Source of the DNA: Eutreptiella sp. 'Long Island Sound 2002'
Lineage: Eukaryota > Protista > Euglenida
Direction: 5' to 3'
Length of the DNA stretch: 64,000 bases
Assembly: GCA_964036045.1 (NCBI GenBank)
Contig: OZ038378.1
Location: 43,710,001-43,774,000 of the forward strand
In this document: in pieces, positions 12,856-39,000 of the stretch
Position numbering within the stretch: the stretch's first letter is position 1
How the letters are laid out: each line of letters begins with the position of its first letter
Made by a program: the position numbers and the translations under genes
The notes under the pieces: model-generated
The model's input: the letters and a program-made list of their open reading frames with translations, nothing else
What the model was told of the DNA's origin: nothing
The model's database searches: none

Positions 12856-13614
12856 TTAATGCTGTAGCTTCCTCATTACCTGCTCGCGCAAGGGTACGTG
12901 TGCCCCCCCCCCCCCTTTCCCCCCAAGGGACATAGTGGGATTCTGCTTCGTCCCCGATAGGGCCTGCTGGATTAGGGCCACGGCTGCACGAGCCGGCCCT
13001 AGATGGCCGTGAGGATCAGGGGTGGACGGGCCGATTCGACGGTTTTCGGCTTCGAGTTTGTCAACAATAGGGCTGATGGGCCCTGCCGCAAACATGTTCT
13101 TCTGCACCTGGGGCTGTGGCAACCCCCCCAACGACGGAGGGGTGTCAGAGTCGACCACGATGGGGCCCATGGGCGAGGCCATCGTACCCCAGTGGGCAGC
13201 GCGCGTGGGTGCAGCGTTCGTCCGCTCGATCACCCTGACAGATGGTTCGATTATTGCCCGATTCTTGGTGCTAATGACGGTTCCCGTGCCTTGAGAAGGC
13301 AATTGTGGTGCACTTAGCTCTCTTTGAGGGTGATTGTCCATTTCCCCCCCAACCAACCCAGGTACCCCAACCGCATCTAGAGGATGGGGGGCCCCGATGG
13401 GACCATTCCGGGATTTCGGAGACTTGGGATTTGTTGCCACTTGGGGCTTGGCCCGTTTTTGCGGCCCTTGTCCGGTCGATGGAGTAAGGGACGAGGAGGT
13501 CGTGAGGGCAGGGACCTGGACACCCTGAGCTATCCCTCCCGGGGAAGAGTTTTTGGTTTCGATTTGGTCCACGATTTCGAGGTCCGATCGCTTTCTGCGA
13601 TGCCAAGCCCCCAA
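12856..13614 (-). CDS. Pro/Gly/Ser-rich hypothetical ORF of the 2 kb unit (copies at 14639-15305, cut by the LINE, and 27913-28629)
   Basis: The ~240-250 codon frame stays open in all copies and starts just downstream (minus strand) of the motif array. No domain was recognised, and the copies are too similar to show selection. Confidence 0.35.
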   Translation of the reverse strand: MGAWHRRKRSDLEIVDQIETKNSSPGGIAQGVQVPALTTSSSLTPSTGQGPQKRAKPQVATNPKSPKSRNGPIGAPHPLDAVGVPGLVGGEMDNHPQRELSAPQLPSQGTGTVISTKNRAIIEPSVRVIERTNAAPTRAAHWGTMASPMGPIVVDSDTPPSLGGLPQPQVQKNMFAAGPISPIVDKLEAENRRIGPSTPDPHGHLGPARAAVALIQQALSGTKQNPTMSLGGKGGGGAHVPLREQVMRKLQH

Positions 13615-13644
13615 CAGAGACGAATGCGCTGAGGATAGGGAAAT

Positions 13645-14185
13645 AACACAACCACTTCGCGGTGGAGGGTTGAGCTACATATGCATGCATGCGCGGAGGA
13701 GGGGGAAAGAACACAACCACTTCGCGTTGGATGGTTGAGTGTGGCATGCATATGTGTGTCTACGTACTTCTATAACTAGTTATTCAGAAGGGATGGCACA
13801 ACCACTGACGCCTTAGGGTTGAGCGTCAACATACCTAATGTGAGGGAATGGATTGCTCAACCACTTCATTCCATGAGGGTTGAACCTGCACAACAACGGG
13901 GATAACCACTACTTCAGTGAGAGGGTAGAGAAAGACAAAGGAAGTCACCACCGCTTGACGTTGAGGATGGAGAGGTACGTATGAGGAAGGAAGTCACCAC
14001 CGCTTGACGTTGAGGGTGGAGAGATACGTGTGAGGAAGGGAAGTCACCACCTCTTGACGTTGAGGGTGAAGAGATACATGTGAGGAAGGGAAGTCACCAC
14101 CACTTGGGCTTAGGGTGGAGAGAGGCATTTGAAACTAATGATGGTGTGTAGAAATTCACCACCAATTCTTGGAGAGGGTAGGGAC
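13645..14185. repeat. Array of ~10 bipartite inverted-repeat motifs (CAACCAC/TCACCAC-N9-12-AGGGTTGA/AGGGTGGA); copies at ~26703-27245 and ~28697-29190
   Basis: Motifs listed directly from the sequence, spaced roughly 40-85 bp apart, including a 50 bp subrepeat present in 3, 3 and 2 copies. Confidence 0.85.
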
Positions 14186-15305
14186 GTGCCATACTTGTTA
14201 CAACTATGCGAGCACAAATAGCAATCATGGCAATAATCATTCACAAACACTTACGTGAGGTTTGAGACATACCAATCATGCTGGTTCCCCTTGCGTCTGT
14301 GCATGCACGGCGATGCGCTGTCCGTGTATCGGACTCGCGCAAGTAGTGCGCTCCCAGCTCGAATTCAGGTGTCAAGTACGGCCGCATGTGGTGAAATTCG
14401 TTCGAATGCAGAGCACCCTACGAAAAGGCAATCTAAACTCTTGAATAGCTCCGTCAAGAAACCAATTATCTCCAAGTGCGATGCTCTCTCCGAACTCTAC
14501 TTGCGTGGATTGCTTGATCCTGGCATCCAACATATCCATGCCAACCCAACCACGATATGTGATGCTTGCCATATCACTTGTAAGGATTGCTCGCTTTCCT
14601 TACCAATGCTACACTCCACCGCTACTTGGTTTCCCTCATTACCTGCTCGCGCAAGTGTACGTGTGCCCCCCCCCCCCCTCCCCCCCAAGGGACATGGTGG
14701 GATTCTGCTTCGTCCCCGATAGGGCCTGCTGGATTAGGGCCACGGCTGCACGAGCCGGCCCCAGATGGCCGTGAGGATCAGGGGTGGACGGGCCGATTCG
14801 ACGGTTTTCGGCTTCGAGTTGGTCAACAATAGGGCTGATGGGCCCTGCCGCAAACATGTTCTTCTGGACCTGGGGCTGTGGCAACCCCCCCAACGACGGA
14901 GGGGTGTCAGAGTCGACCACGATGGGGCCCATGGGCGAGGCCATCGTACCCCAGTGGGCAACGCGCGAGGGTGCAGCGTTCGTCCCCTCGATCACCCCGA
15001 TAGATGGTTCGATTATTGCCCGATTCTTGGTGCTAATGACGGTTCCCGTGCCTTGAGAAGGCAATTGTGGTCCACTTAGCTCTCTTTGAGGGTGGCTGTC
15101 CGTTTCCCCCCCAACCAACCCAGGTACCCCAACCGCATCTAGAGGATGGGGGGCCCCGATGGGAACATTCCGGGATTTTGGAGACTTGGGATTTGTTGCC
15201 ACTTGGGGCTTGGCTCGTTTTTGCGGCCCTTGTCCGGTCGATGGAGTAAGGGACGAAGAGGTCGTGAGGGCAGGGACCTGGACACCCTCAGCTATCCCTC
15301 CCGGG

Positions 15306-18300
15306 CAAGCCATGCCCGGGCCACACCCCCAAGGCGCAGACCTCCTGGGGTTCCTGAGCAAGCCCTCCGCAGAGCGGACCAACCCGAACCAGCACCGATC
15401 CTGGACCCGGAGGGGAACAAATATCACGCCCACTGGCAACGGGGGGTGCCCCTCTACCACAAGACGTCGGTCACGGTGCATGCCCACCCCGACCTCGGAG
15501 TGGATGGTCGCCTCGGGGCGTACGAGTGCGTGGGGCCCGGATGGCAGCTAAACGTGCTACTCACGCACGTCCCATTCGGGGAGGAGACCAAGGACTTCCT
15601 GGACACCCTGAGCCTGGCGTACCGCCGACTCTCCCTCCTGGCACCCACCATCATCATAGGCGACCTAAACGCCGCCCCCACCGACGACGACCGCACCGGC
15701 CCACCCACAGCCACCGACATAGCTGTCCGGGACGCCATGCACCAACTGGGCCTCACCGACCTCACGGCAGGACTCACCGGCACACCCTCCCATTACCCCC
15801 ACCAAGCCGGCACCCACCCATCCCGCATCGACACGTGCTACGGGGACCCAACCACGGTGCGCGTCCACGAAGCAGCCTACGGGGACCTCCCGCCCACAGG
15901 CACGGGCCACCGACCCCTCTACATCAACCTCATCATCCCCAACCTACCCCCACCCGCGGCCACCCTGCCAGACGACACCCTCCCACCCACACTGTCGTTC
16001 CCGGCCGAGGACGACCACGGCGCCTGGCACAGGTATAACAGAGCCCTACACGCCATCCTGCGCCGCCCGGATGCACCGACACTCACCACCGCCATGCGCC
16101 GGGCGGCACAAGCATGCGGCATGGAGCGTGACACCAGCCACACGGGAGCACCACCAGACCTCACCCTCCAACAACTCGTCCATGACATCTGGACCACGAA
16201 GGAGGACCTCGCCACACTGCTACGCCCCAGCACACCGGAGGCACGAGACCGGGACGCCCACCTCCGTGCGCTCCTCACCACCCGCCGCCACCAACTCCAG
16301 GAATGGCACGCCCACCGCATAGCGGCCGCAGCCCAGGAACGCGAAAGATACGGCAGAAACGACACGCCGTACAAGTCCCTGCGGTACGTCAGCCGCATAC
16401 TGGAGGACACGGGGCGCCGTACCATCCACGCGGTGCGCACCCCCGAAGGAGGCCTCACCAATGACCCCGACGCCGTCCTCCAGGCAGTCCTGGACAGCTT
16501 CCAGGCACAACACGGGGGCGCCCTCCCCGAGCTCGACCCCCACACCAGAAACACCATCCGCGAGCATGTGCCCAGGGTCTTCCACCGGGAACAGCAGGCG
16601 CCATCGAACACGACCCCTTCAGCATCTCAGAACTGCAACGCGCCCTAGACCGCCTGAAGAAGGGGGTCGTGCCCGGCGTCGACGGTTTGCCGGCCGAAGC
16701 GTACCAACGCCTCACCCTGCCCGTCAAACGCCGCCTGGCAGCCCGCCTGTGGGACATCGTCACGGGCGCCACGCCCATCCCCCCTGAGTGGGCCAACCTG
16801 GTCCACCCCCTCTACAAAAAGGGGGACGGGGCGCAGCCGGGGAACTGGCGGCCCATAGGCTGCGCCACCACCGAGGTCAAGCTGGCGTGGACGCTCATCC
16901 TAGGCCGCATCGCGCTGGCGGTCTTCGCCCACGTGCCCGCCAGCATGTGGGGAGCCATGGCCGGCAGGTCCCCCCACGAGGCCATCTTCCTCCAGGACAC
17001 CGCACTAGACATGAACCCCTACGAGATGATTATCGCCTCCCTCGATGTCCAAGGCGCGTTCCCCCACGCCCCACACCGGCTCCTCACGGAGGTATGGGAT
17101 GCCATGGGCCTCCCATTCCTATCCTTCATGACCGGGTACATCCAGACCCGACTCTACGCCGTCATCACAGCCGCAGGCCTCACCCCCTGGACCGGCACAG
17201 ACAGCGGGGTCCCCCAGGGAGGCGCCGAAGGCCCCTTCCTCTACCTCCTCGTCACCCTACCACTGGCATTCGAGCTAGCACGGGTATACCCGGGGTACGC
17301 CCCATACCCGCTGCGGTCCCCCCTCATCAACTTCGCGGACGACAACCTCCTAACTACGGCCACCCGCCACCGCGACCCTGAGAACGCAGGGCTACCAACG
17401 ACCACCGAGCAAGCGTCCGCCATTCTCCAACTCACCACAACCTACCTGGACGCCCACCAGCTCCTAGTGCACCCCCGCAAATCGGTCGGGCAGGCCGACG
17501 CCAGGACCCCCACCCCCCACATCCGGAAAGGCGAACCCCTACACCTGGAAGACACCACAGTCCACCTGGGAGTCACACAGGCCACGCGGCACCACCACAT
17601 CACACTCCCAAGCAAGCTGGAAGAGCGCCTCGCCCGGCTACCCCAAATTGCCAGGGGGGACCTCCTGTCTACGCAGGGCCTGGCGTACTTCATGGAAGCG
17701 GTGCTCAACGCGGCCATCGGGTACCAAGCCCTGCACCTCCCGCGCCCCCAAGACGCCCTTCGTCACGCTCGACAGCAAGTGACGAAGGCATGGGCGCAAC
17801 ACGGAGGCTGGCCCACGTCTTTCCCCAAGGAGGCCATGATGGCCCACTGGCGCTACTACGGAGACAATACAGGCGCCCTGGTCGACATGGCCTATGCCAA
17901 ACACGCAGCGCACCTCCTACACAGGGTGACACACAACCACCAACCTGCAGTTCGCGAGGCGGCAGCCATACGCATAAAAGAAGCGCAAATGGCCCGCAAC
18001 ACCTTCCCCCGGTGGATACTAGCGCAACACGGCGTCTCCACCTCCGTGGGCACTGGCATCTAGGCCCAGCTACAACTCCTCCTACCGCACCACACAGACG
18101 CCATCCTGACAAACCACCACTGCGATCAACAGGGGCCACTCGTGGCCACGCACACCGACATCCACCGACACCCGGCAGGCGAGGTGGACACCCTGCGCCT
18201 CGTGGGGGCCACCGTCACCATCCTGTATATCACCCCAACACAGATGAGGATCATGGCCCAATGCGACGCCCACCACGCCCCGTTCCTTTCCGACCCACAA

Positions 18301-20493
18301 TGGCCAGCACGCCACGTCTTCCAAGCGTACCTCCGCGCATGTGCTACGAAGGCAGGGCGCGACATGCCGGGGCCCAAGGACATCGACACGGCGTACACAG
18401 CCTTCCAGCGCCAGCACCCCCGGCCCCGCCCGAGCGAGCACGAGACCCCCAACGACGGCGGCAAGACGAAGGAGGAGCCCACCCCGTCAGCCGAAGGCTG
18501 GACACCACCCACCATCCTGCTACTAGCACCAAACGGCCACAAACATGCTACCCGCACTGTCCAGCGACACCATGCCCCCTGGTCCATCCCCAAACACAAT
18601 GCACCGGAGACCGATGTACCACCAGTTAGACACAGTGACCAGGGCATACCACGCACGTGTTGGCACTGCGGCCCGGCAGCCCTCGACACTCCGTGGCCCC
18701 TGCTACACCTCATCTCCACCCACTACCACACCCCCACCGCCGCCGCCACCGCCGACCAGCAGGCATGGCTCTCCCCCTGGTTTCACACGGTACCCCCAGA
18801 CCACCCAGCGCACGTAGCTTGGACCCGAACACCCACGGCGACATGGACGTTCACCAACGAGCGGGCAGACCCGGACAGCGTGGCCATAGAGTACGACCGC
18901 TGCGACCCACACCGCGCAGGACCTCAGGAGGCACCCATGCGCCCCCTACAGCACAAATGCCCCACCCTCCGCGGCGACAAAGACGACAAGAAGCGGCGAC
19001 AGACCATCACGTTCTAGAGGTTCCACCCCAATACGGGATACCTCTTCCACCTGATGTACGCGTATATCACCCAGGGGCGCCCAGACAGGGGCCTCCTCCG
19101 CCTCACCCCACGAGCCCAGGCCATCATCACCCAGGGGATAGGCGTCTATGCAGCGCCACTACTACAACCCACGCAAATCACGGCCAGAACCGCCCAAGGG
19201 AACCCCATCTACGTCTATCACCCCACAGCAATTGCCCGCCTACCCATACCCAGCGACACCGACATCATCTACTTCACTGACGCATCCGGCACCCAGCAAC
19301 GCACCCCCACGGTCGGTTGCGCCTCCGTGCGCATCACCCGGCACGCGGACGGCCTCCACGTGGAACACCACACCGGGGCCACCATCTTTGGGGCGTCCTC
19401 CCACGGCGAACTGCGCACCATGGCAGACGCCGTCACCGCCACAGCGCCACCCACAACGATCCGGCCCCGCCACATCTGGGTAGTCGTGGACGCCACGGTC
19501 GACATCCACCTCACCAGGCGCCTTGCGGACCTGCCCCTCCACAAGGCACTCGAGTCCGGCCTCACCACACAAGCGTTGGAACTATGGATGGCCTTCAGGG
19601 GCATGCACCCCCAGGACGCCCTACACATCGTCAAACAGGAGTCACACCGCTACGCATACGGCAATGGACGCGCAGACACGCAGGCCAAACACCAGAACAC
19701 CAGCCGGACCCCAGGGCTCGAACACGTGCGACTGGACACCCCACACCACAGCCACCTGCAGCACCTGCCCCCGATACCCCCGGCCACACAGCCCCCCCAA
19801 TGGATGCCCGAGGACACGCCGTACACAGATCGAGACAAGCAGTACCACTACCCCACACCCATCCAGCAACTGGCCACCACACTGGGCCACCCAGCGAACA
19901 CCGAACTCCTCCGACGCCTCGAAGACTCCGTCCACACCCCCCTCTACTACTCCGCCCTGCGCCCGGATAGCCTCCCAGCACACCTACAAAAACCCCGACT
20001 CCAACTCGCCCTCGAACAGCTTCCCCTCCTCACCCGATACCACCGATGGTATGCGCGCCGCTCGATCCACGTCCCCGCAGGATACACCAAATGCATCTGT
20101 AGCCACACGGAAGAAGAAACCTGGGACCACTTCAAGGTGTGCCCCCTGTACAGAGGACTGGACACCCTCACAGACTGGAACCCAACCCACACCATCGCAC
20201 AGCACGCCGGATGGCTGACGCAGTCCCCGGCGACCCAGCAACTCACCACCGTCCTCAAGCAGGCGGAGGTACTCGAGGCGGTCCGCAGGGGACTCGTCTC
20301 CACTGCCGTCTACACCTTGCTACGCACCCACGCGGAGGACCCCCAGGCCACGGCGGCGCGCATGCAGCGGACGGCCGTTGCCAAGACAGCGGAGCAGCTC
20401 ACATACCGCACCCACAAATACCTGCAGCATGCAGCAACCCTGCTCCAAACAGACCAAGCCCACCTCCTCAAACTCCTGTTCTACCAACCATGA
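15306..20493 (+). pseudogene. pol ORF (~1730 codons): AP endonuclease, reverse transcriptase, RNase H, C-terminal Zn knuckle
   Basis: APE: IIIGDLNA, SRIDTCY, GHRPL. RT: PGVDGLP, YKKGD..PGNWRPI, LDVQGAFP, GVPQGG, FADD. RNase H: YFTDASG, HGELR, VVVDA, GNGRADTQA. Zn knuckle: CICSHTEEETWDHFKVC. There is one frameshift near 16600, a probable second near the truncated 5' end, and in-frame TAG stops at 18061 and 19015. Confidence 0.95.
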
Positions 20494-20611
20494 GAACCTA
20501 CCCCGTGACATACCAACACGGAACCCCCACCACGTCTACACACCGTCCACCGAGCACAACACTGGCACGGCACACACGGGCACCACAGGCACCGCACACA
20601 CTCCCACCAGC

Positions 20612-21518
20612 ATGCGCGCGCCACCAGCCCCCATCCCCCCACGCCGCCGTCCGTCCACAGGTACCACTAACCGCCAGCCACCGCATGTCCCCTCTGCGTA
20701 CGCCAGCGGCTACTACAGACGGCCCTGCCCTGCAACCCAGACCACTGGGTCTGCCTGGGAGCCGCGCACCGCCTCACCCACTGCCCCCACTGCGGGGACC
20801 TCAACCCCCACCACCGCGGGCGGCCCGCGGCCCCAGCCGCACCCCCCCCCCCGCCAGCCACCCCAGCTTCTTCGGGTTCCTCACCGACACCCTCCGGGAC
20901 CACCTGGGAGGGTACTACGTGGCGGACGCGGCGGACCACGCATGGACCATAGCCGTGGCCACGGGCAGCACACCCCTGCCCCCCCACAGCCCACCCTTAC
21001 GCCACAGCGGAGGCGGCTTGAACGTGGCGGCCCGCCACATCCTCCTCGCCCTATACCTCCACCACTGTGACCTACACCTCCCAGACCCACAACTCCCGGC
21101 CCCCCAAGCAGCAGCCCTGACGCCAGAAGCGTGGGCGGACACGGCACCCGAGGAGATAGCAGCCTACCTCCGAATCACTTGCCGCCGGTTCAACACCGCC
21201 CTCGGGCGACGGAAGGGAACACCTTACCCACTCAGCGCACTCCTCTACCCGGCACACCACCTCCACCCCGCACAACAGAAGCCCCCGGAGGGCTGGGCGT
21301 CTTTTAGGGACGCCCACCTGGCCGCCCCCGACGAGGCCACCGCCACACGGATGGGCCTCACGGACCAGGAAACCTACGTCAGAGGCCTCAAGACGAGCCT
21401 CCAAGAGGCACACCGCTGGCACGCCCGCTCCCCGTCGCCCCCAAGGGGACAGGGGGATTCACCCGCCCCCGACACACACCAGGCCAAGAAGACCAAGACA
21501 GGTCAGGGTGCCCGCTAG
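20612..21518 (+). pseudogene. Cargo ORF A: RING finger (C3HC4/IAP-like) followed by a helical domain of unknown function; two frameshifts
   Basis: 20686-20793 translates to CPLCVRQRLLQTALPCNPDHWVCLGAAHRLTHCPHC, with 7 of 8 Zn ligands. It joins the upstream frame (ATG 20612) and the downstream frame (SFFGFLTDTLRDHLGGYY..., stop 21518) through inferred 1 nt slips, the second in a poly-C run. Confidence 0.65.
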
Positions 21519-22221
21519 CGCGCCCGCCAGCAGGGCGCGACGCCCCGACCAGGGCCGGGGTCCAGCCACACCGCACCACCCCACGCCCAGACCCCCGGGG
21601 CACACCAACAACACCGCCCCCGCCAGCGCCCACCACCACCACCGTACCGCAGCACCCAAACCCTGCAGCCCAGTCAGCCACTACCGCCCACACACGTCCA
21701 CACCATGCCAGGACCACCATACGCGCAGAGCCAGGGGACATGGCACCACCAACACCACCACCACGCCCCCGTCCCTCCCAACCCCTACCCCCTAATGCCC
21801 CCATGCTACAGCGACCCCCACCAGTTACATCCCCACCACGCCCCAGCACAACCGGGCCCCACGAACCACCCACCCCACATGGCACACATCACCGCACCAC
21901 ACCATCACGTATTCCACCACCACCAGCCCCTACCACCACACCCACCAACGCCGGGGTACCACACACAACCAGCACACCCTCAACACCACCACCACGCGGT
22001 CCAGCAACACCCGCCGCCCCCGCTACACGGGCCCACGACACACGAGCCACGGTACACCCCCATAGACCCGCGGGAAGCCGCGCACGCACACCAGCAACAC
22101 CAGGGCCTAGTAGGAGCGCCCCACCACCACCAGCAGCCCCCCCACCCACACCCCATACCAGCGAGCACCATCCACCAGCAGCCACCCATTACATACGGAC
22201 CACAGCCCCACCCGGACGCCC

Positions 22222-23721
22222 ATGCGGCCGCCTCCCACCCACACCCCGGCACCACAACCAGTCAAGAACCGCAAGGACCGCACGGCGCACACACGCAACA
22301 CCCACACGACCCACAGGGACGCCCAGACCGCCAGCCAGCACAACACCCACCCCCGCCCCCCCCACCACCAACAGCGCCACCCCCACACCACCCCCCTCCG
22401 CCCCCCCCCCCCCCCCCCCGGAGACAAGGCCACGGACGCAACACGCGGCAGCCAGCACCAGCCAATTGACGTCGATGCCCCCGCCGACACACGCCACCGC
22501 GAATTCCCCCTCCCGCGACCGCCACAAGAGACCCCATCACCGGACCCCACGCGCGACAACGACGACCACCCCCCCCAACCCACACCACTCCCCCCATCAC
22601 ACCCCGCACCACCAGCCGCCGCACCGGCCGAACCCTACGCCCTACACAACCCCGCAGCGGTACGGCAGCACCTCCGGGGACTCGAGGAACAGGACGTGCT
22701 GTGCCTCCGCACCTCCGGCACCAGCACCCGCATCCGGGCGGCCACCCTGGTCCAGGCGGCCACCCTGGGGGAAGGCGTCCGAGACTTCCTCTTCGACGCC
22801 TTCCTCCACGTCGCCCGACACGACCGCCCCCCACGCGCCACCCCGGACGGCGAGAGCCCGCCCCCCACGGGGAGCCGGATCTGGGTGCCCCCCATCGACT
22901 GGGGGCGACACCTAGTCGGACACCCCGTGCCGGAGCGGGACAGCACCCAGGGCCGCACCCGCTACCGCGAGCCCAACATGGCCCACCCCCCACCCGGCGC
23001 CACCCCCGACAACACCAAAGAGTGGGAGCGGGAAACATGGGTGGCCCGGATGGCCTCCCTGAGCAACTTCCGGCACCACGTCCCGGGGGACATCCCCACC
23101 CCCGACGAGCGGCAGCCAGCCCCCTCCACGTACATGACCCTCATGTACAATCTGCACTACACCCTCTCCACCACCCACTACCACGCACGCACTGACCACT
23201 GGGTGGTACACGGCACCGACTCCCTCCTCCCCGCCGACTACGCCCCCCCCCCACACAACCCAGGCCTCGACACGTACGCCAGGGGGGACGACCCGGACGA
23301 CCCCCACATCTGGGGCACGTGGGAACGCAAATCCCTGGACACGCTGCTCTCCATCCGCAGCGGCAGCCAGGGCCTTGGTAGGGCGATGTATTGCCTCGCC
23401 AAGTGGACCCAACGGACCTGGGGGATCCCCACGGACCGGTGGGTGTGGGTGGTCACGCTGCGCCCCCAGCAGAGGGAAGCCCCCCCAAACCGCAGGGGAC
23501 CCACCCCCCCACGCCCCACCACCCTACAGCTCTGCCCATACATGGTGGCGGCCTGCCTCATGGCGCTGCTGTGGCCGGGCCCAGACACCCCCACCCAAAA
23601 CTACCCCCACCTCACAGAGGAGGACATGCCCGGCATCCAGCGATGCTTCTTCCGCACCCTCGACTACCTCCAGCAAACACACCCGCACGTCCTGGAGCAG
23701 ATATGGCCACCCCCCGGGTAA
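22222..23721 (+). CDS. Cargo ORF B: disordered Pro/Thr-rich N-terminus and a Ulp1/SENP (peptidase C48)-like cysteine protease domain
   Basis: Motifs occur in C48 order: GEGVRDFLFDAFL, IWVPPIDW, YNLHYTL (His 23155), HGTDSL (Asp 23218), RPQQ (23464-23472), LCPYMVAACL (Cys 23533). The true start is probably the ATG at 21740 via a poly-C slip near 22400. Confidence 0.6.
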   Translation: MRPPPTHTPAPQPVKNRKDRTAHTRNTHTTHRDAQTASQHNTHPRPPHHQQRHPHTTPLRPPPPPPGDKATDATRGSQHQPIDVDAPADTRHREFPLPRPPQETPSPDPTRDNDDHPPQPTPLPPSHPAPPAAAPAEPYALHNPAAVRQHLRGLEEQDVLCLRTSGTSTRIRAATLVQAATLGEGVRDFLFDAFLHVARHDRPPRATPDGESPPPTGSRIWVPPIDWGRHLVGHPVPERDSTQGRTRYREPNMAHPPPGATPDNTKEWERETWVARMASLSNFRHHVPGDIPTPDERQPAPSTYMTLMYNLHYTLSTTHYHARTDHWVVHGTDSLLPADYAPPPHNPGLDTYARGDDPDDPHIWGTWERKSLDTLLSIRSGSQGLGRAMYCLAKWTQRTWGIPTDRWVWVVTLRPQQREAPPNRRGPTPPRPTTLQLCPYMVAACLMALLWPGPDTPTQNYPHLTEEDMPGIQRCFFRTLDYLQQTHPHVLEQIWPPPG

Positions 23722-24198
23722 CCCACGTGCCCGCGCAGCCGAGACAACGCCGCCACACCAGCACCAGCACGCACGGATCACCAGGGAAAACGCGCGCACA
23801 CGCCCGGTGCCCGAACCCGCACCCTCGTTGTCGCTACTTGCAGGACCCAGCATCATACGCCCGCCCCCGAAGCCCAGGACCCTCCGCCGTCTCCCTCAGC
23901 CCTCTCCTCCGCCTCCGACTCCACAACCTCCACCACCACGACCACCTCATCCACCACCACCACCACGTCCTCATCCAGCACTCCACCCCCCAGGCCGCGG
24001 GGGACACCTCCCAAACGGGCCCCCGAACCCGCCCCCACCGCGAGCAACCCCGCCGCCGCCAAGGCCCACGCCCCGACGAGGCCCACACCCGCGACCCAGC
24101 CGAAACCCAAGACCGCCGCCAAACAGCCACCCAAACCCGTCAGCGCGCCACGACCGCAACCCGCAGCCAAGCCCAAACCCAAGTCCAAACCCGGCGCC

Positions 24199-25175
24199 AT
24201 GACGGCAGCGCGAGCCGGGCCCCCCGAGGACGTCCTCTATGACATTCGGCCCCAGCCGTCCCAGGCCCGGAGGCAGCAGCGCCCAGCACGGCGCCCCCCC
24301 ACCGTCACCGCCGCCGCCGCCACCACCTTCATAGCGGAGCGCGCCGCGGCCGAAGCACGACGCACCTCGTCCCGCCACCTCTCAAAGCCCGCACCCCAAG
24401 CCCACGGACCGCCCCCGACCAGGCCACAACGACGCCAGGGTCCGCCAGCAGCGTCCCCGCCCCCCTACCAACCCTCGATGACAGCCCACATACAGCGCAT
24501 GCCCCACTACCGCCGCCGCCGCGAGTCCCCGCCCAACCCCGAGGCGGAGACCGTGCGCGCACACTCGCGGGTCCACATCCGCGCACGCCTCCACTCCCCG
24601 CGCACCCCCACGGAACAGGACTACAAGGAATCCCCCAGGCCCGCCACCGCCACCGGTCCCCACGACCCCGTCACACCCACCCACGCCCACTCCTCCGCCC
24701 AAGACCGCAGGCCCGCCCAGGGACAGTGGTGGCAGGCTGGACCCACACGCAGCTCTGGGAGCTGCGAAAGTGGGCCCGGGGAGAGCCCTCCCTCGAGGGC
24801 CTGGTCCATCGGCCCCGCAAGGGGTCGGTGGAGAACTGCCGCCTCCGGCCGGCGGGGGGGTGGATGCCACAGGCCGCATGGGAAGCCATGCTGGCCGATG
24901 CGCTCCACCCCCTGGGAGTCCACCCCCGCAACCTCCCCGCGCCCCAGGACCACCCGTATGTCCTCAGGCGCCTGCGGGAGACCCTCCAGGAGACACAGCG
25001 AGACGGCATCCGCCTATGGGACATCACCCAAAGCCCAGCCCCGCACACACACCCCCCCTCACCACCCCACAAGCGTCGGCGCACCGACACCGGCGGCACC
25101 CACAGCACCCCAGGAGCCCTGCGCACCACACAACACGACGCGCCTGACCCCCCGGCCAGCGGCGCCGCCACCTAA
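24199..25175 (+). pseudogene. Cargo ORF C: disordered region and a small Trp-rich globular domain, unknown function; one frameshift near 24735
   Basis: Frame 24199 runs to GQWWQAG, then frame 24726 continues WTHTQLWELRKWARGEPSLEGLVHRPRKG...WEAMLADALHPLG...LRETLQETQRDGIRLWDI to a stop at 25175. Confidence 0.4.
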
Positions 25176-25762
25176 CCCCGTTACCCAGCAAACCACCACC
25201 ACGGGGCGCCACGCCAGGCCCCGCCCAGAAGTCACCACACGAACCGGACGCCGAAGGACGCCAACGCACACGACAACGGGCACCACTACGCCCAAAGGCA
25301 CCGAACCCAGGCCCGCTACCGTCGCAACCGCCTAACCGAGCCAAAACCCAAACACAAATCAAACCCGAGCCACACCCCGAAACCGCTAACCCTTGACTCC
25401 TAACCAGGCCCGCCGAGGGAACAACGTAACCACAGCCCACACCCACAGCCCACACAGCCGCCTAACCAGCCAGCTCCAGAAGCAAAGAGACACCTCACCA
25501 AACCCACCCTGGCCCAAGCCCGTGTACATCTGGACGCGCGAGCTGTACCCCTAGGGCGCGACCGCCGCCGCAGCACCGACGACACACGCCAGAGGACACA
25601 ACACTATTGCACCGCCGCACCAGCTGCCCGTGCCTGTGCCTGCAGTGTACGCGCGCCCCTGTTTTTCTTTTTCTTTTTTTTTTGATGGAAAAAAAAACGA
25701 AAATTAGGGGGGGAGGAAGAGGGACACAACCACCCATGGCACACGCGCACCGCACACAGCGC

Positions 25763-25929
25763 GCACACCGGTGAACGGGAGCCAAGTGGCCCAGGACACC
25801 ACACACGCAACACAACACACCGAGCGAGCACACCGGTGAACAGGAGCCAAGTGGCCCAGGACACCGCAGACGCTACACAGCACACCGCGCGGGCACACCG
25901 GTGAACAGGAGCCAAGCGGCCCAGGACAC
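25763..25929 (+). repeat. Three ~65 bp-period repeats in the LINE 3' UTR
   Basis: The core gcacaccggtgaacRggagccaagYggcccaggacac occurs at 25763, 25828 and 25893. Confidence 0.85.
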
Positions 25930-28900
25930 TGCACACACGTAAGGCGGCCGAGGGACAGGAAAGAACCAATACCCCATGGGTCGGACGCACTGGGGCGACC
26001 CAGCCGACCCACCGGGCCAGTGGCAGGAGCGGTACTCCAAGGCCACTGGTCCGAGCCCGGCCAGGCTGCATCGGGGACCATGGCAAACGTCAGCCGGAGC
26101 CATGGAAGCAACCGGTGACAGGCGAGCCGGTACACAGTCCAGGAAGGGGTCACCTGCCAAGCAGAGTGGCCCCGCAACTCAAGCCACAAGGGTGAGGCGG
26201 TCGTACCGTAGACTAGCGGGAGCAATACCCCTTGTGGTGAGAGATACTCCACACGGCTAGGCAGCCCCCAGAGCTGCCGCCCAAAGGAGGGGGCATGTGG
26301 CCCTACCCATGGACACTTGTGGGGGCACCCTCCCACCTGGGACACATGGACCGGGTGGCCGCGACAATGCCTTCCCAAGCACATGCGGGAGCGGCTCAAG
26401 AGGCACCTGACATAGGGCAGTGGGAGGGACAGGACGTCCCCTTGGTAAGACCTTCTTCCTGCAATGTCAAAGGATGCATCCCGAGCTCCCGAAGATACCT
26501 ACCTACCTACCTACCTCGTTTTTGCGGCCCTTGTCCGGTCGATGCAGTAAGGGCCGAGGAGGTCGTGAGGGTAGGGACCTGGACACCCTCAGCTATCCCT
26601 CCCGGGGAAGAGTTTTTGGTTTCGATTTGGTCCACGGTTTCGAGGTCCGATCGCTTTCCGCGATGCCAAGCCCCCGACAGAGACGAATGCGCTGAGGATA
26701 GGGAAATAACACAACCACTTCGCGTTCGAGGGTTGAGCTACATATGCATGCATGCGCGGAGGAGGGGGAAAGAACACAACCACTTCGCGTTGGATGGTTG
26801 AGTGTGGCATGCATATGTGTGTGTACGTACTTCTATAACTAGTTATTCAGAAGGGATGGCACAACCACTTACGCCTTAGGGTTGAGTGTCAATATACCTA
26901 ATGTGAGGGAATGGATTGCTCAACCACTTCCATCCATGAGGGTTGAACCTGCACAACAACGGGGGTAACCACTACTTCAGTGAGAGGGTGGAGAAAGACA
27001 AAGGAAGTCACCACCGCTTGACGTTGAGGATGGAGAGGTACGTATGAGGAAGGAAGTCACCACCGCTTGACGTTGAGGATGGAGAGGTACGTATGAGGAA
27101 GGAAGTCACCACCGCTTGACGTTGAGGGTGAAGAGATACATGTGAGGAAGGGAAGTCACCACCACTTGGGCTTAGGGTGGAGAGAGGCATTTGAAACTAG
27201 TGATGGTGTGCAGAAATTCACCACCAATTCTTAGAGAGGGTAGGGACGTGCCATACTTGTTACAACTATGCGAGCACAAATAGCAATCATGGCAATAATC
27301 ATTCACAAACACTTACGTGAGGTTTGAGACATACCAATCATGCTGCTTGCGCTTGCGTCTGTGCTCATTTCGCGCCCGTGAGGCTGTCATTTTCCTCTAG
27401 CTCACCTCGGACGGTACCAAGACGTCACGAGGGTGTTCCATGCCGTAGTACAAGTTATAGATCCCCTTCACCACGTACATGGCCCCATACATCCACCCAA
27501 TCGTCCAATCAATGCACTCCTGGATGGGATCAGGGATTGCGTCCGGCAAAGAGACTGTCCACGTCCGATAGTCGAACTGGGCTCCAAATTGCCATGCACG
27601 GCGTTGCGCTGTCCATGTATCGGACTCGCGCAAGCAGTGCGCTCCCAGCTCGAATCTAGGTGTCAAGTACGGCCGCATGTGGTGAAATTCGTTCGAATGC
27701 AGAGCACCCTACGAAAAGGCAATCTAAACTCTTGAATAGCTCCGTCAAGAAACCAATTCTCTCCAAGTGCGATGCTCTCTCCGAACTCTACTTGCGTGGA
27801 TTGCTTGATCCTGGCATCCAACATCTCCATGCCAACCCAACCACGATATGTGATGCTTGCCATATCACTTGTAAGGATTGCTCGCTTTCCTTTGCAATGC
27901 TACACTCCACCGCTACTTGGTTTCCCTCATTACCTGCTCGAGCAAGTGTACGTGTGCCCCCCCCCCCCCCACCTCACCCCCAAGGGACATGGTGGGATTC
28001 TGCTTCGTCCCCGATAGGGCCTGCTGGATTAGGGCCACGGCTGCACGAGCCGGCCCCAGATGGCCGTGAGGATCAGGGGTGGACGGGCCGATTCGACGGT
28101 TTTCGGCTTCGGGTTGGTCAACAATAGGGCTGATGGGCCCTGCCGCAAACAGGTTCTTCTGGACCTGGGGCTGTGGCGACCCCCCCAACGACGGAGGGGT
28201 GTCAGAGTCGACCACGATGGGGCCCATGGGCGAGGCCATCGTACCCGAGTGGGCAGCGCGCGAGGGTGCAGCGTTTGTCTGCTCAATCACCCTGATAGAT
28301 AGTTCGATTATTGCCCGATTCTTGGTGCTAATGACGGTTCCCGTGCCTTGAGAAGGCAATCGTGGTCCACTTAGCTCTCTGTGAGGGTGGCTGTCCGTTT
28401 CCCCCCCAACCAACCCAGGTACCCCAACCGCATCTAGAGGATGGGGGGCCCCGATGGGAACATTCCGGGATTTTGGAGACTTGGGATTTGTTGCCACTTG
28501 GGGCTTGGCTCGTTTTTGCGGCCCTTGTCCGGTCGATGGAGTAAGGGCCGAGGAGGTCGTGAGGGTAGGGACCTGGACACCCTCAGCTATCCCTCCCGGG
28601 GAAGAGTTTTCGGTTTCGATTTGGTCCATGATTTCGAGGTCCGATCGCTTTCCGCGATGCCATGCCCCCGACAGAGACGAATGCGCTGAGGATAGGGAAA
28701 TAACACAACCACTTCGCGTTGGAGGGTTGAGCTACATATGCATGCATGCGCGGAGGAGGGGGAAAGAACACAACCACTTCGCGTTGGATGGTTGAGTGTG
28801 GCATGCATATGTGTGTCTACGTACTTCTATAACTAGTTATTCAGAAGGGATGGCACAACCACTTACGCCTTAGGGCTGAGCGTCAACATACCCAATGTGA

Positions 28901-29869
28901 GGGAATGGATTGCTCAACCTCTTCATTCCATGAGGGTTGAACCTGCACAACAACGGGGATAACCACTACTTCAGTGAGAGGGTGGAGAAAGACAAAGGAA
29001 GTCACCACCGCTTGACGTTGAGGATGGAGAGGTACGTATGAGGAAGGAAGTCACCACCTCTTGACGTTGAGGGTGAAGAGATACATGTGAGGAAGGGAAG
29101 TCACCACCACTTGGGCTTAGGGCGGAGAGAGGCATTTGAAACTAATGATGGTGTGTAGAAATTCACCACCAATTCTTGGAGAGGGTAGGGACGTGCCATA
29201 CTTGTTACAACTATGCGAGCACAAATAGCAATCATGGCAATAATCACTCACAAACACTTACGTGAGGTTTGAGACATACCAATCATGCTGCTTGCGCTTG
29301 CGTCTGCGCTCATTTCGCGCATGTGAGGCTGTCATTTTCCTCTAGCTCACCTCGGGCGGTACCAAGACGTCACGAGGGTGTGCCATGCCGTAGTACAAGT
29401 TATAGATCCCCTGCACCACATACATGGCCCCATACATCCACCCTAACGTCCAATCAATGCATTCCTAGATGGGATCAGGGATTGCGTCCGGCAAAGAGAC
29501 TGTGCACGTCTGATAGTCGAACTGGGCTCCAATTTGCCATGCAAGGCGATGCGCTGTCCGTGTATCGGACTCGCGCAAGTAGTGCGCTCCCAGCTCGAAT
29601 CTAGGTGTCAAGTACGGCCGCATGTGGTGCAATTCGATCGAATGCAGAGCACCCTACGAAAAGGCAATCTAAACTCTTGAATAGCTCCGTCAAGAAACCA
29701 ATTCTCTCCAAGTGCGATGCTCTCTCCGAACTCTACTTGCGTGGATTGCTTGATCCTGGCATCCAACATATCCATGCCAACCCAACCACGATAGTTGATG
29801 CTTGCCATATCACTTGTAAGGATTGCTCGCTTTCCTTTCCAATGCTACACTCCACCGCTACTTGGTTTC

Positions 29870-31051: not shown

Positions 31052-31999
31052 ACACACAATAGCAGCGTTTGATTTTATACCCCCCCCTCCCTTTTTCTTG
31101 TATCTTTTCACATCTATAGTATTGATACCCAACTACTATGCGTGCGGTTGATAGCAAAATGTTGGGGCTGCAATGCGACCACGAGCACTTGTAGTTCGTA
31201 ACCAACCAGGTCCACTTCGACAAGTTGATCCAAGACGGTTATGAACGCTGGATCTTGGTGGCAATCCTATGGGAGTTCACGAGGATGGTGCTTACTCCAA
31301 GCGAGTCCACGAGTCTTTTTGGTGATCTTTCCCCGGACATGATGTTGCTCGTTCCGTGGGACATGCCGCATTCCGTGATTCGGATGCGAGGCCACATGGG
31401 TAGCCAACCTGAACCTTGATCTGGAACTTCCAACGCCTTGTTCGGAGGTCGTTTTGGTCTGTGAACTTTGATCCATTCTCCATTCGTGAGTGGTGTTGAT
31501 GCTGTAGAGGAGATAGAGATGGGCGTTTTGTGTCTGCGTTTCTTTTTGCAATATGTTCCAAGAATTTGAGGACACGAATTTTGCGTTGACCTTTTCTCTG
31601 GTAATTCGGCTGTGGGGCTCTGGGACCTTGAGGCGTGGGTCTCTCGGTGATAATGGAGAGTTCCTCTTGACTTGTCGTTGTGCACGCTGGAAGGTGGTAT
31701 TGGAGGAGCTAGACGAAACCTGCGGAGACCTCAAGCTTTGTGGAATTCCTTCACACTGTTCCTTAGACGAAGTGCGCTACGACGAAATTGAGTTCTTGTA
31801 TGCAGAGAGGGGGCGTTGGTGTGTGATGGCCATGTTCACAGCTCTGTAATCGTTGGCGTGATGGCGTGGACGCACCGGGACATCTTCGTGTGGTTGTGTT
31901 TTCGCTTGAGTGAATTGACTTGTCGTTGCTTGAGACAACAGGCTATGTGAAACATGTTCAAAATGTTCTCGAGATGTGCAGCACAAGGACGAAATTGGA

Positions 32000-33345
32000 T
32001 GCTGTACCAATGGACTGGATTGCTGCCACGGTCCAAGGGTTCCAAGCACAGTTTAAGATCCATGGCGTGAAAATATTTCTCCCCCTTCTCGGTGTGGATC
32101 TTATACCGGCCTGATCCCACTCGTTGCAGTACCTCAAATCGACCTTTCCACAAGCGACTAAGCTTTGTGGACCGTCTGTCCATTCCTGCTCTATTCACCT
32201 TGGCCCAAACGGTCTCTCCGGGCTGAAAAACTTGAAGGGGGTATCGCCTACGGAAGTCTTCCGTGGCTTTCTTTTGGATGGCTGTGAACTTGTCACGGAC
32301 CACCTCCCTGTCAGCCGCAAGTTGGGTAAAAAATTCCGCGGCGTCTTTGCAATCTGTATGGGGGAGGATGGGGCGGGTATCCCCAAATCCTATGCGGTGT
32401 CGGCCAAGGACCAACTTATAAGGGGAAGCCCCCCTGAGAGGCCCTGGGAGGTCATTTAAACCGCATGTGGCTAAGGGCAATAACACAACGCAGTCTTTAC
32501 TACCTTTTCGTTCAAGAAGCTTGCGCAAACTTTGAACAACTAATTGGACGGAATTTTTTGCACGTCCATTGGACTTTGGTTTATACACAATACTCTTGTA
32601 CTCATCGACTCCGGACAGACGAAAAATTTCCTTGCAGAACTCAGCATTGATCAAGTGGTCGTGGTCGGAGTAGATTGCTGAGGGCAGTCCAAAATGCACA
32701 AACACCCTCTCTACCATAAACTGGGCCACAGCCGCGGATGTGAGCCCTGCTTCAGTACATGGAATGGCCACTATGTAGCCGGTCAAACGACAAAGAAAGC
32801 ATAATACCACATCATATGTCTTGCCATTGCGTTTAATAGGGTTGTCTGGCAATTTAACAAAGTCAACCGAAATGGAGTGAAAAATGTGATCAGCGACTAG
32901 GGAGCTCTCACGGGTGTCCGGCGGACGACCCCGTTGAGGCTTGGCACGTTGGCATACACTTCAATGGTGCACCTTCTGTGAACACACCGCAGAAATCACA
33001 CTCAGAGTGGATCCTGGACCCATTATCTTGAACATACGATGGAATAGCCGTTCCGTCTTGTTAATGCCCGGGTGAGAGTAAGAATATACACCCGTAAACA
33101 CTTGTGGCAAGATTTTAACGGGCACCACACACTTTGCCTCTGTGACGTATCTTGCCCTTGTGGAGCAAGTAGTACGATCCATGTTGTTCGTCATTGCCAT
33201 ACTTCGACTTCTGCAATTCAGGCCACATCTTCTTATACACCGGGTCCCTTGAATAATAACTACTCCAGTCTTGATACAACACATGCACATCAGCAGGTAC
33301 TTGTACCTCGTGTAACAAATTCAGCGACCGTTCGACCACCGTGTC
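32000..33345 (-). pseudogene. Ty3/Gypsy integrase fragment (HHCC remnant, DDE core, GPY/F module), frameshifted
   Basis: YSHPGINKT...VCQRAK, ISVDFVKLP (D1), GLPSAIYSDHD (D2), PKSNGRAKNSV (catalytic E position mutated to K), SPYKLVLG, FQPGETVW and LWKGRFEV. Confidence 0.92.
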
Positions 33346-36001: not shown

Positions 36002-39000
36002 GTGACCACGTTGCACGCCTTGACTTTGAACGTTGGCGGCCCACACCTCAGCAGACGGAGGTGGGGTCGCCTCGTGCAAGAAATAGCTGCCTCCTCCCCC
36101 CACATCATTGCGCTCCGGGAGGTCCGCTTTAGAACAGGCGAGGCCCACCTCGCATACACTGCAAAGGCCGGCCCAAACTACTAACCGCTGGCCAATGATG
36201 ACAAGCGCCCCGACATGATGTTCCTTGTGCATGAGAGGGTCCACAAGTATTGCAAATTAATGGCCCACCGCTGGCCCCATGCTATAGCTCTCCGCGTCCA
36301 GATTCCAGGCATTCCCGAACTCACTTTCGTGAACTAGCATGGACCGTTCACCCTACGGGAAAGGGAGGCCTTAGACGCCTGGATTGCGTCTGTCCCCAAT
36401 GTGGGCATTGTTGGAGGAGACTTCAACGACGGAATTTGGCACGCAAGCCCACATCACAGGAGGATATGGCACGACTGGCTCGACTCCGGACTCCTTGTTG
36501 ACCCACAATACCAAACAATACCTCAAGGGCCCGAGCCACACCCGAGGGGGCAAGCCCCTGGACGCGCTCCTCCTGTCGCAAACAACATGGAATGCACTCA
36601 CGCCGGTGGCCTACCAAGCGACCACGTTCCTGTCGGTAGGGGACCACGTAGGTGTCGAAATCCACACCACGGTCGTGCTCCTTGAGCCGCAGTCCCCAGA
36701 CCCCGAGGCCATCAGCATCCGTGACTGGACGAGTAGAGATCTGAAGGGCTTCCGCGCACACATGGGGAGCTGGTACCGGGGTGTCCCCAAAAACATGACC
36801 ATGGAGACCGCCAGCAATATGGTGCGGAAAGAGGTCGCGCGGTACGTCGCTGCGCACAAGAAGCCAGACAGACGACCAGACCAGGCTCATCACGATATGC
36901 AGACCCGTCTCGCCAAGAACCCTTGTGACCAGGCCGCACACAAACAATGGGGTGAACACATGCAATGCAAACGCCACACGGAGGTGATGAAGAAACTGCG
37001 CTGTTTCCGCAAATCCGCGGTTGGAAGCACAGGGACATTCTTCACGGACCTCGCCACGTGGCTTGTGAAGCCTACTCACGTTTCTTCCATGTCTCCCACT
37101 CTGGCGTCGGCAAACAAAAAGCTGCCATTTTTTGCGGGAGATCCGCAATGGGTTCCAGAGAAGGCCTTCAATATGTTGCCAAATCTCCGCGTGCCAAGAA
37201 CTCCCGTGGATCAGACCCTACCAACGTTGCGCGAGAGGTGGCCAATCAGGCCAAGAAAAAGTTGATGGGCATGGACGGGGTCCCGCCGCACACAATACAG
37301 TGGCTACCGGAGAACGTACAATGGATCCTATATCTCTCTGGGACGTGCGGTTTCATGCCAACACGGAGCGTTTTCAGGGGTTGGTGCCTTTGTGGTCTCA
37401 TTTGTGCCCGCTGAGTGTCCGGTTGGGGGGGGTATGTGGGGCATATTCGGAAAGCCCTTGAAAAGGGCTATTCGGAACACCCCAGGTTTGCATGCTGTGC
37501 TAACGACATGTTTGAGATTTTTCTCCGCTTTGGACAGTGCCTGTGTTGCCTGCTGCCTATTTTTGCTAACAGGCAGCCACCATGTCTTCATACAAATTCA
37601 CACAACGTGCTGTTGCTTCCCCTGATGCGCCACTGAAACCTTTGGTGCGAAAAAGAGCGCGATCTGGGGGTGAAACTTGGGTGCAGGTGACGCGGCGGCC
37701 TGACTTGCGCGCCAAAAAGCCTCGTACCGGTGGGTCACAGCAGCCTGCATGCGCCCACACAGAGCACGACATTTTATCCACTACTGAGGCCGCGGCTTTT
37801 GCAGCCCAGTTTTGGGATAAAAAGATTCACCCCACCAAGGCTTCGCAACACGAATTTCTGGCTGCAGGATTGGGAAAAACTGAAGAAATATGTTCCCAGT
37901 CACAAGCACGGGGATGTGTGCCCCAATGGAGTCCCGGCCCTTGCAGAAAGGGGCAACGATGACAACGAATCGGATTCGGAATAATGAGTGATCCCTGGAC
38001 CATTGCCTGTGCCCTGTGTGTCCTCCCTTGTACAGCTCGGTGCGCAAAACTGTGACCACCTACCCCCCCCAACCCATACATTTCTGAAACGGCGTTTTCC
38101 CACAGATTTCGAAAAGCATACACATACCCCCCCCAAGGTGACGACATTTTGGTGCATTACGCCAAAAGTTGAGAAAAGTCTGAAAAAATGTGAAAACGCT
38201 CCGTGTTGGCATGAACCGGATGTCCCAGAGAGATATAGAAGGGTCTGTGAGGTATGGAACCAGGGACAGATGCCGACAGAGTGGACTGCTACCTCCATAT
38301 CGCTGTTGTACAAGAAGGGCGACCCCAAGGATGCAAGCAACTACCATCCGTTAGCGGTATCCACATGCATGTACCAAATTACCACGAAGTTGATCTTGAG
38401 GCGCATCAAGAAACCTCTCACCGAAGTACTATCCGAACACCAAGCTGGAGGACAAAGGGGGCATACCACACTGTCCCAGGCTATAAAACTGTTGTCGCCA
38501 GCGCTGAGCATGCCGGGAACACCGGACGTGGTACTCCTTGATATCGCCAAAGCGTTTCCGAGCACGCCCCACCCACTGCTATGGGCTGCAATGCAGCAGG
38601 TGGGGGTACCAGATCGCTACATATCCATGATGCAATACACATACCAAGAGACACGGTGCTAATATCGGGTGGATGGCGAAAAACATTCATACCACCAGAG
38701 CAGGGGAGTGAAGGAGGGATGTCCCCTCTCCCCCCTACTCTTTTGCGTGGTGTACGAGATGTTTCACGGAACTCTTGCGGCAGAATTCCCCTCTGTCCAC
38801 TTCTACACGTACATGGATGATGTGGCCTTTGTCTCGCCGGACCGATCGACTACGATGGCCGTACTCAGTAGGGTCACAGACCTGGGAAACACGCCGGGCT
38901 TCCATGTGAAGAGAGGAAAAACAGAGGTGTGCTCCTGGTCGGCGACCTACAAGGTGGACCAGCTACTGTGGGACGGGCAGGTTAATACTGTCGGACCTCC

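Follow-up and report, generated by a model that had tools for sequence, protein, structure and literature searches.

What does a LINE carry behind its reverse transcriptase, and does the sequence found there belong to the element? Long interspersed nuclear elements (LINEs) are regarded as minimal retrotransposons, in which one or two open reading frames (ORFs) are followed by a short 3′ untranslated region (UTR). A locus of the euglenid Eutreptiella sp. 'Long Island Sound 2002' puts this picture in question. The window analyzed here is a stretch of 64,000 nucleotides (assembly GCA_964036045.1, contig OZ038378.1, positions 43,710,001 to 43,774,000 of the forward strand). In it, the initial annotation described one 11.2 kb LINE at 15306-26514, with a set of dedicated accessory genes, the cargo, downstream of the pol gene. 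Our reading is that the block belongs to a LINE family (hereafter family A), within a wider clade, that has integral 3′ coding regions under purifying selection, and that the translation of these regions would be coupled to the ORFs upstream of them. We give this reading a probability of about 0.8.

The block first had to be delimited as an insertion. Its GC content is 62-74%, with C exceeding G and A exceeding T, compared with about 50% GC outside, and T makes up only 8-12% of its plus strand. The C/A skew had been described as unbroken to the tail. It is indeed continuous from pol through the cargo, but it stops near 25700, and the final 800 bp are unskewed; an island made of a T-run and an A-run (25660-25705), in an otherwise T-poor element, marks the place. 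The block is flanked by a 92-bp direct repeat, and uninterrupted repeat units at 13439-13557 and 28496-28614 match both of its flanks. Thus, the block interrupts one tandem-repeat unit and ends in a single (TACC)n tail, as was first claimed, and it is one target-primed insertion of an LINE of the apurinic/apyrimidinic endonuclease (APE) type into a satellite unit. The target duplication is unusually long, and no clear duplication was seen in two related copies, L002 and L003.

Whether the cargo is part of the element can be decided by looking at other copies. Family A was compared copy by copy, and not through a consensus, in eight copies: the window copy, L001 (92-96% identical to the window, with a 1076-bp deletion), L002 (96.5%, over 10,558 bp from the equivalent of 15964 to the tail), L003 (94-96%), L004 (89%), L005 (77%), L006 (81-85%) and the intact copy L011 (93-96%). 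In all eight, the order from pol through the cargo is collinear, each copy lies in different flanking DNA, and collinearity persists at 77% nucleotide identity. The GA(TACC)3-4 end was read in five of them (window, L001, L002, L003 and L006, the last with one TAGC unit instead of TACC), and in each it is followed by unrelated sequence. Truncation at the 5′ end occurred independently, at 15305 in the window and at the equivalent of 15964 in L002. Family A therefore shows the hallmarks of a LINE, namely the absence of long terminal repeats (LTRs), variable 5′ truncation and a common 3′ end. It is also abundant. A word search with the ORF at 22222-23718 returned at least 99 close homologues, all from ENA, in 90%-identity clusters of up to 484 members (484, 114, 105 and 89 for the ORF4 homologues), and these cluster sizes indicate hundreds of copies in one ENA assembly.

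These comparisons bear on the view that the cargo is not part of the LINE at all, being either host DNA carried along by a one-off 3′ transduction or a second mobile element lying adjacent or nested. Transduction of 3′ flanks is a known behaviour of LINEs, and the cargo has no recognizable LINE domains. Since collinear copies lie in unrelated flanks and have one common tail in the five copies read to their ends, the cargo is part of the element, which excludes a local transduction or a neighbouring insertion for this locus. Both codon usage and C/A skew run continuously from pol into the cargo, and one of the cargo genes, ORF4, accompanies pol in three further LINE families and has no free-standing relative among 1.84 billion representatives (see below). 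A foreign origin of the cargo at this locus is thus hardly credible, and the linkage of pol and cargo holds beyond the window.

The size of the element was found to be larger than first described. Similarity between L011 and L003 begins at L011:9682, equivalent to L003:5838, and the sequences upstream are unrelated in each. We place the true 5′ end at this point, so that the complete element measures about 15.7 kb. The 11.2 kb block is therefore giant, as claimed, but it is a truncated copy, from which about 4.46 kb was removed at the 5′ end. In L011, a 5′UTR of about 0.3 kb is followed by ORF1 (1234 aa), pol (1727 aa from its first ATG), an ORF3 frame of 932 codons, the ORF4 domain (called as 341 aa) and ORF5, which lies in frame after ORF4. 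The coding sequence 3′ of pol amounts to about 4.7 kb and is followed by a 1.3 kb 3′UTR. The cargo frames are open in this copy; closed frames, which the initial annotation had named as evidence against its proposal, were not seen there. ORF1 has no Pfam match above threshold; a 52-aa protein from an NCBI/JGI record, P0356, clusters with ORF1 of L003. The APE and reverse transcriptase (RT) domains both lie in the first 3 kb of the block. The APE match reaches E=1.3e-7 in L001, where it extends further toward the N-terminus than in the window, and the best PDB matches of the RT region are to human LINE-1 ORF2p, and weak. The RNase H domain that had been assigned to pol gained no such backing, as no Pfam or PDB sequence match was obtained in the pol C-terminal region and the D-E-D-D-like and CCHC motifs were recognized by eye only. 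A neighbouring, unrelated LINE in L001 matches PF00075 weakly.

The window element itself is a dead copy, 4.2% diverged from L011 (Table 1). Compared with L011, it has five frame-breaking insertions or deletions (1-nt deletions at 15356, 16598 and 24736, two additional nucleotides in the poly-C tract at 20842 and 11 at 22391) and four premature stops (18061, 19015, 20668 and 21516).

Table 1. Features of the family A copy and of its target site (window coordinates).
Feature	Position	Strand	Evidence and remarks
Target-site duplication, left copy	15214..15305		Inside ~1.8-2 kb tandem-repeat unit; 95.7% identical to 26515-26606
Decayed 5′-truncated copy of ~15.7 kb APE-type LINE (family A)	15306..26514	+	Collinear with L001-L006 and L011
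APE endonuclease region of pol	15312..16648	+	PF03372, E=6e-7; N-terminal motif lost by truncation; frame shifted at 15356 and 16598
Reverse transcriptase region, frame 1	16669..18063	+	PF00078, E=1.7e-15; ends at window-only TAG 18061
Pol C-terminal region with RNase-H-like and CCHC motifs	19054..20493	+	Ends at conserved TGA 20491-20493
RING-like Cys/His finger, pol frame, 3′ of pol stop	20686..20793	+	Frame-specific dN/dS; kept in L002-L006
Poly-C tract of variable length	20842..20852	+	C11 in window; ORF3 core thereby out of frame with finger
ORF3 conserved core, frame 0 in window	20866..21518	+	dN/dS; ends at window-only TAG 21516
Pro/His-rich low-complexity ORF3 tail	21519..22469	+	dN/dS 0.42-0.68; 246-bp copy-number difference from L011
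ORF4, orphan domain with conserved His, Asp and Cys positions	22600..23721	+	dN/dS and homologues; conserved TAA at 23719
ORF5, in frame after ORF4 stop: Ser/Thr/Pro/Lys-rich part, then C-terminal domain	23722..25175	+	1-nt deletion at 24736
3′UTR	25176..26495	+	T/A-rich island 25660-25705; 65-bp tandem repeat 25758-25939; conserved terminal segment 26095-26495
(TACC)n terminal repeat	26496..26514	+	GA(TACC)n end common to five copies
Target-site duplication, right copy	26515..26606		95.7% identical to 15214-15305

Do the frames behind pol encode proteins? ORF length is no evidence for coding here: with T so rare, open stretches of 200-540 codons arise by chance in each of the three forward frames. 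The raw list contains many mutually overlapping ORFs, several of which are clearly spurious, for example those at 21740-22915 and 23375-24202. The case for coding was therefore built on the linkage seen in other copies, on selection specific to one frame and on what is conserved in distant relatives. Selection was measured as the ratio of nonsynonymous to synonymous substitution rates (dN/dS) by the pairwise Nei-Gojobori method, segment by segment, among the window, L004, L005 and L006, with the other two frames as controls; a sliding version was also computed. Such pairwise ratios include neutral decay after insertion and so overestimate the true ratio. The pol C-terminus (19054-20490, frame 1) gave 0.25-0.41 in five of six pairs and 0.65 between the window and L004. 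The segment immediately behind the pol stop (20493-20900) gave 0.33-0.38 in four of six pairs and 0.59 and 0.69 in the others when read in the pol frame, frame 1, so that coding selection continues in this frame past the conserved pol stop. Values of 0.40-0.59 were obtained for the ORF3 core (20901-21515, frame 0; P from 5e-6 to 1.5e-2), 0.44-0.72 for the ORF4 core (frame 1) and 0.53-0.73 for the N-terminal part of ORF5 (frame 1), and the Pro/His-rich part is also read in frame 0. Off-frame ratios were mostly 0.8-1.9. When a codon model was trained on pol alone, it favoured one frame across most of the cargo, the same frames as those indicated by dN/dS, and the ORF3 core has pol-like codon usage.

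These results speak to the possibility that the sequence behind pol is a T-poor 3′UTR without coding function, whose ORFs are open by chance. The base composition just described would produce such frames, some of the raw ORFs are indeed spurious, and no coding signal is seen in about 5 kb of C/A-rich 3′ sequence of family B, one of the related families. Within family A, significant constraint was found neither in the C-terminal part of ORF5 (frame 0) nor in 22114-22599 (frame 1). Against this, the finger, the ORF3 core, ORF4 and the N-terminal part of ORF5 each have a ratio significantly below 1 in a single frame, and ORF4 retains an amino-acid identity of 24-32% across families whose DNA is no longer alignable. 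A non-coding origin of these frames is thus very improbable; the 3′ coding regions of family A are integral to the element and under selection, and the proposal of dedicated accessory genes is upheld in this respect.

The wider distribution of ORF4 was followed in four loci (six copies), L007-L010, which represent three other families. In family B (L007 and L008; RT 52-53% identical to family A), the ATG of the ORF4-like gene overlaps the last ~10 pol codons, and the gene is followed by the C/A-rich sequence mentioned above. Family C (L009; RT 50% over a partial alignment, RNase-H-region 50%) also carries the ORF4-like gene directly behind pol, and then a 1079-aa ORF with an ORF5-like C-terminus. 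In family D (L010; RT 55%), a 1086-aa ORF that starts with a finger stands between pol and the ORF4-like gene. The content between pol and ORF4 therefore varies among families. A profile hidden Markov model of ORF4 searched against 1.84 billion representatives gave 138 matches, and all of those inspected were fragments or LINE-linked paralogues; no host or free-standing relative was found in this set. The presence of ORF4 behind pol in three further families indicates that it is ancestral to a LINE clade of at least four families. The 1079-aa ORF of family C (L009:14590-17829) has His/Pro-rich and Arg/Ser-rich stretches, and its C-terminal motif is common to ORF5 of the window. In L010, an aspartyl protease ORF of the retroviral type (PF13975, E=8e-11) immediately precedes the family D LINE (L010:6373-7539) and appears again after its 3′ end (22542-22778); it may belong either to this LINE or to an LTR element next to it.

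What the cargo proteins are is less clear. The first protein had been called a RING protein. A strict RING pattern had no match on either strand, and the spot was then revealed by the frame signal of dN/dS. It encodes a finger of eight ligands, C-x2-C-x11-C-x3-H-x2-C-x4-H-x4-C-x2-C, conserved in six copies, in which ligands 5 and 6 are spaced as C-x4-H, compared with x2 in the RING cross-brace. The finger reaches Pfam RING families only below threshold (zf-C3HC4_3, E=0.14, 12.4 bits against a cut-off of 27; Sina_RING, E=0.18), as does that of family D (E=0.05-0.13; zf-RING_2, 13 bits against 27.3), so that "RING-like" is as far as the name can be taken. The ORF3 core, its Pro/His tail and ORF5 have no Pfam match. 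A word search with ORF3 gave 14 matches but was swamped by low-complexity words. ORF5 has 484 open codons in L002, and its C-terminal motif is the one that recurs in L009.

ORF4 had been named an Ulp1-like protease, and neither profiles nor folds lent support to this name. For 17 members, no Pfam match was obtained at E<=10, and none to a C48 profile; the homologues from families B-D had no Pfam match above threshold, and a PDB profile search returned only BOP1, a spurious match. Two AlphaFold2 models have predicted local distance difference test (pLDDT) scores of 32.6 and 47.8, and with these low-confidence models Foldseek found no match in the PDB at E<=0.001. A His (HY), an Asp (TDS/VDS) and a Cys (CLA/CLW) can be aligned across families A-D, with spacings of about 20 and about 60 residues. 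Their order and approximate spacing are as in clan CE peptidases; the Gln is not conserved, and the Cys lies within a predicted helix of a low-confidence model. Judged by this motif, an Ulp1-like enzyme would be a reasonable lead. As a conjecture, the most probable task of the finger and the Cys/His enzyme-like protein would be to handle ubiquitin- or SUMO-type modification in the host, or to process the large proteins of the element itself.

How would the ribosome reach these frames? ORF1, pol and ORF3 of L011 occupy a single frame that is interrupted by nothing but TGA codons: one TGA at the end of ORF1, and TGA, five codons and another TGA at the end of pol. The arrangement ORF1-TGA-pol is in frame in L001, L003 and L011. 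The pol stop first placed at 20493 was confirmed, as its TGA (20491-20493) is kept in all six copies that cover the site; the second TGA is limited to a young subfamily. ORF4 and ORF5 lie in the -1 frame and are separated by a conserved stop at 23719 (TAA; TAG in L005). No conserved AUG was found for ORF3, ORF4 or ORF5 in family A, and the interval from the ORF1 stop to the first ATG of pol holds a putative N-terminal motif of the APE domain, recognized by eye, with the Pfam match starting just after that ATG.

An overlapping stop and start, ATGA at 20490-20493, had been pointed out in the initial annotation. The overlap is present in the window, but its ATG is GTG in the older subfamilies (L004-L006), and the frame it opens shows no selection over 20493-20900 (dN/dS of 1.0 or higher in four of six pairs), so that it was rejected as the opener of a selected ORF. 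In L011 (19027-22500), the ATG of this ATGA opens a frame of 1158 codons over all of ORF3 to the ORF4 stop, for which the chance is about 0.06 at that T content.

Because there is no conserved AUG after the stops and the putative APE motif precedes the first AUG of pol, we propose coupled translation. The downstream proteins would be made from the full-length RNA, either by termination followed by AUG-independent reinitiation or by leaky readthrough of UGA. Independent cistrons appear less likely. ORF2 of human L1 is reported to be translated by AUG-independent termination-reinitiation, and its junction with ORF1 resembles those of family A in that ORFs in one frame are parted by one or more stops; a downstream ORF that does not depend on its first AUG would be a second common trait. 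In family A, this pattern would have to recur at three or four junctions.

Within ORF3, a poly-C tract of 9-14 C (C9 in L003 and L011, C11 in the window, C14 in L002) decides by its length whether the finger and the core share a frame. They do so in L003, L011, P0377 and P0378. The polymorphism could reflect polymerase slippage, an error of homopolymer assembly or a recoding site.

Several points weigh against our reading of the family. In the young subfamily, readthrough would be very inefficient, given two TGA codons only five codons apart. In four of the six DNA copies compared (window, L002, L004 and L006), the finger and the ORF3 core do not share a frame. RNA structure 3′ of the three junction stops is not in excess (fold z from -0.7 to +1.2). 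The layout with TGA in frame is not universal, as pol of family B ends with TAA and the next ORF has its own overlapping ATG. To these are added the missing signal of constraint in the C-terminal part of ORF5, the fact that all related copies fetched belong to a single assembly (ERZ25074135), and the cargo proteins themselves, whose function is conjectural because they match no Pfam family, PDB sequence or confident fold.

Some of the same observations bear on a different route, in which the whole element would be read as one giant polyprotein, by UGA readthrough at three junctions, one -1 shift into ORF4 and UAA readthrough into ORF5, and the ORF4 enzyme would then cut the product as in retroviral Gag-Pro-Pol. 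The single frame of ORF1, pol and ORF3 with TGA between them, the -1 frame that ORF4 and ORF5 share, the selected frame running on past the pol TGA, and the position of the putative APE motif all fit this scheme. In-frame C7 runs lie just 5′ of the ORF4 domain, and the NeSL and Utopia LINEs carry an Ulp1-like protease (PMC4640811). However, the yield of serial readthrough would be vanishing, the stops lack RNA structure on their 3′ side, C7 is no classical slippery site, the identity of the protease is unproven, and family B uses TAA with an overlapping ATG. We regard a polyprotein as unlikely.

Equally doubtful are separate RNAs, made from internal promoters, by cis-splicing from the 5′ leader, or by spliced-leader trans-splicing of a polycistronic transcript, the last of which was among the initial proposals. 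Downstream segments without a conserved AUG would suit such RNAs, retroviral env is expressed likewise, and the pol stop has a conserved pyrimidine-rich stretch ending in AG, recognized by eye. Even so, translation of a subgenomic RNA would require a start codon, and trans-splicing found no evidence in its favour: no spliced-leader relic of the dinoflagellate type was seen in the window or in L001-L003. Coupled translation from the full-length RNA is preferred to both routes.

A more far-reaching version of the story would see here a LINE clade of virus-like coding complexity. A 15.7 kb RNA would yield, by serial stop recoding and one frameshift, ORF1, pol, a RING-type ligase, a new family of cysteine enzymes and a fifth protein; the accessory proteins would be needed for retrotransposition or for countering host control, and ORF4 would be a fold or enzyme class confined to these elements. 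We hold this picture to be speculative and rather improbable.

The comparison with known systems defines what is unusual. Family A is like other APE-type LINEs with ORF1, ORF2 and a C-terminal CCHC motif (L1, I and Tad1-like elements) in having APE and RT in one pol and an upstream ORF1, and in its 5′ truncation, its simple-repeat 3′ end and, for the window copy, a target duplication. These elements measure 4-8 kb, whereas family A reaches about 15.7 kb, and it differs from them in a 1234-aa ORF1 without a known domain, in three selected coding regions behind pol and in the single frame of ORF1, pol and ORF3. NeSL-1 and Utopia-1_TSP are non-LTR elements with an additional Cys-protease module beside RT, for which family A has a candidate only. 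Their recognizable Ulp1-like cysteine protease is the N-terminal domain of a single ORF, in elements with a restriction-like endonuclease (RLE) (PMC4640811), whereas the candidate of family A is encoded 3′ of pol in an APE-type element and has no match to the C48 profile. Bdelloid LTR retrotransposons have captured additional ORFs (PMC5408684); these extra ORFs are stable as in family A, but the elements have LTRs. In the literature searched, no precedent was found for a LINE with conserved genes behind pol; the only Ulp1-like proteases that appeared there were domains at the N-terminus of NeSL and Utopia elements, which are RLE-type (PMC4640811), and extra captured ORFs appeared only in LTR elements (PMC5408684).

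The 3′UTR and the surroundings of the insertion have features of their own. The 65-bp tandem repeat of the 3′UTR has 2.8 copies in the window and about 33 in L003:1-2150, upstream of the full-length element of that locus. Its minus-strand translation is Cys-rich, and the database lists such translations as proteins (for example, P0038). The terminal 400 nt (26095-26514) are better conserved between subfamilies than the UTR upstream of them (84-89% compared with 54-64%, for L006), and the segment folds somewhat better than shuffled sequences (z=-2.3). It may be a recognition structure for the RT. The tandem array around the LINE (13439-15305 and 26515-28614) consists of units of about 1.8-2 kb with sub-repeats of 49-50 bp within them (13940-14123, 27001-27168 and 28978-29113), and L011:2138-2831 is an 84%-identical copy of part of such a unit. 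Elsewhere in the window, a GC-rich island (67%) at 1001-2000 has no similarity to the LINE, and fragments of other retroelements lie at 31839-32852 on the minus strand and 37988-38896 on the plus strand, namely a Tf2-type SH3 domain, which at 28.3 bits stays under the Pfam cut-off of 30, and an RT that shares only 25% identity with the LINE pol. The remaining long ORFs are transposon fragments, and Rfam and tRNA scans of the 64-kb window gave no matches.

For the biology of these elements, up to three additional selected proteins behind pol, in a family of hundreds of copies, would widen the coding repertoire of non-LTR retrotransposons. It may then be asked what benefit a zinc-finger protein and a Cys/His enzyme-like protein bring to a LINE. 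Family A would also offer a natural system for studying how ribosomes of a eukaryote get to the third, fourth and fifth ORFs of a single RNA, and ORF4, as an orphan family with clear conserved residues, would be a direct target for biochemistry.

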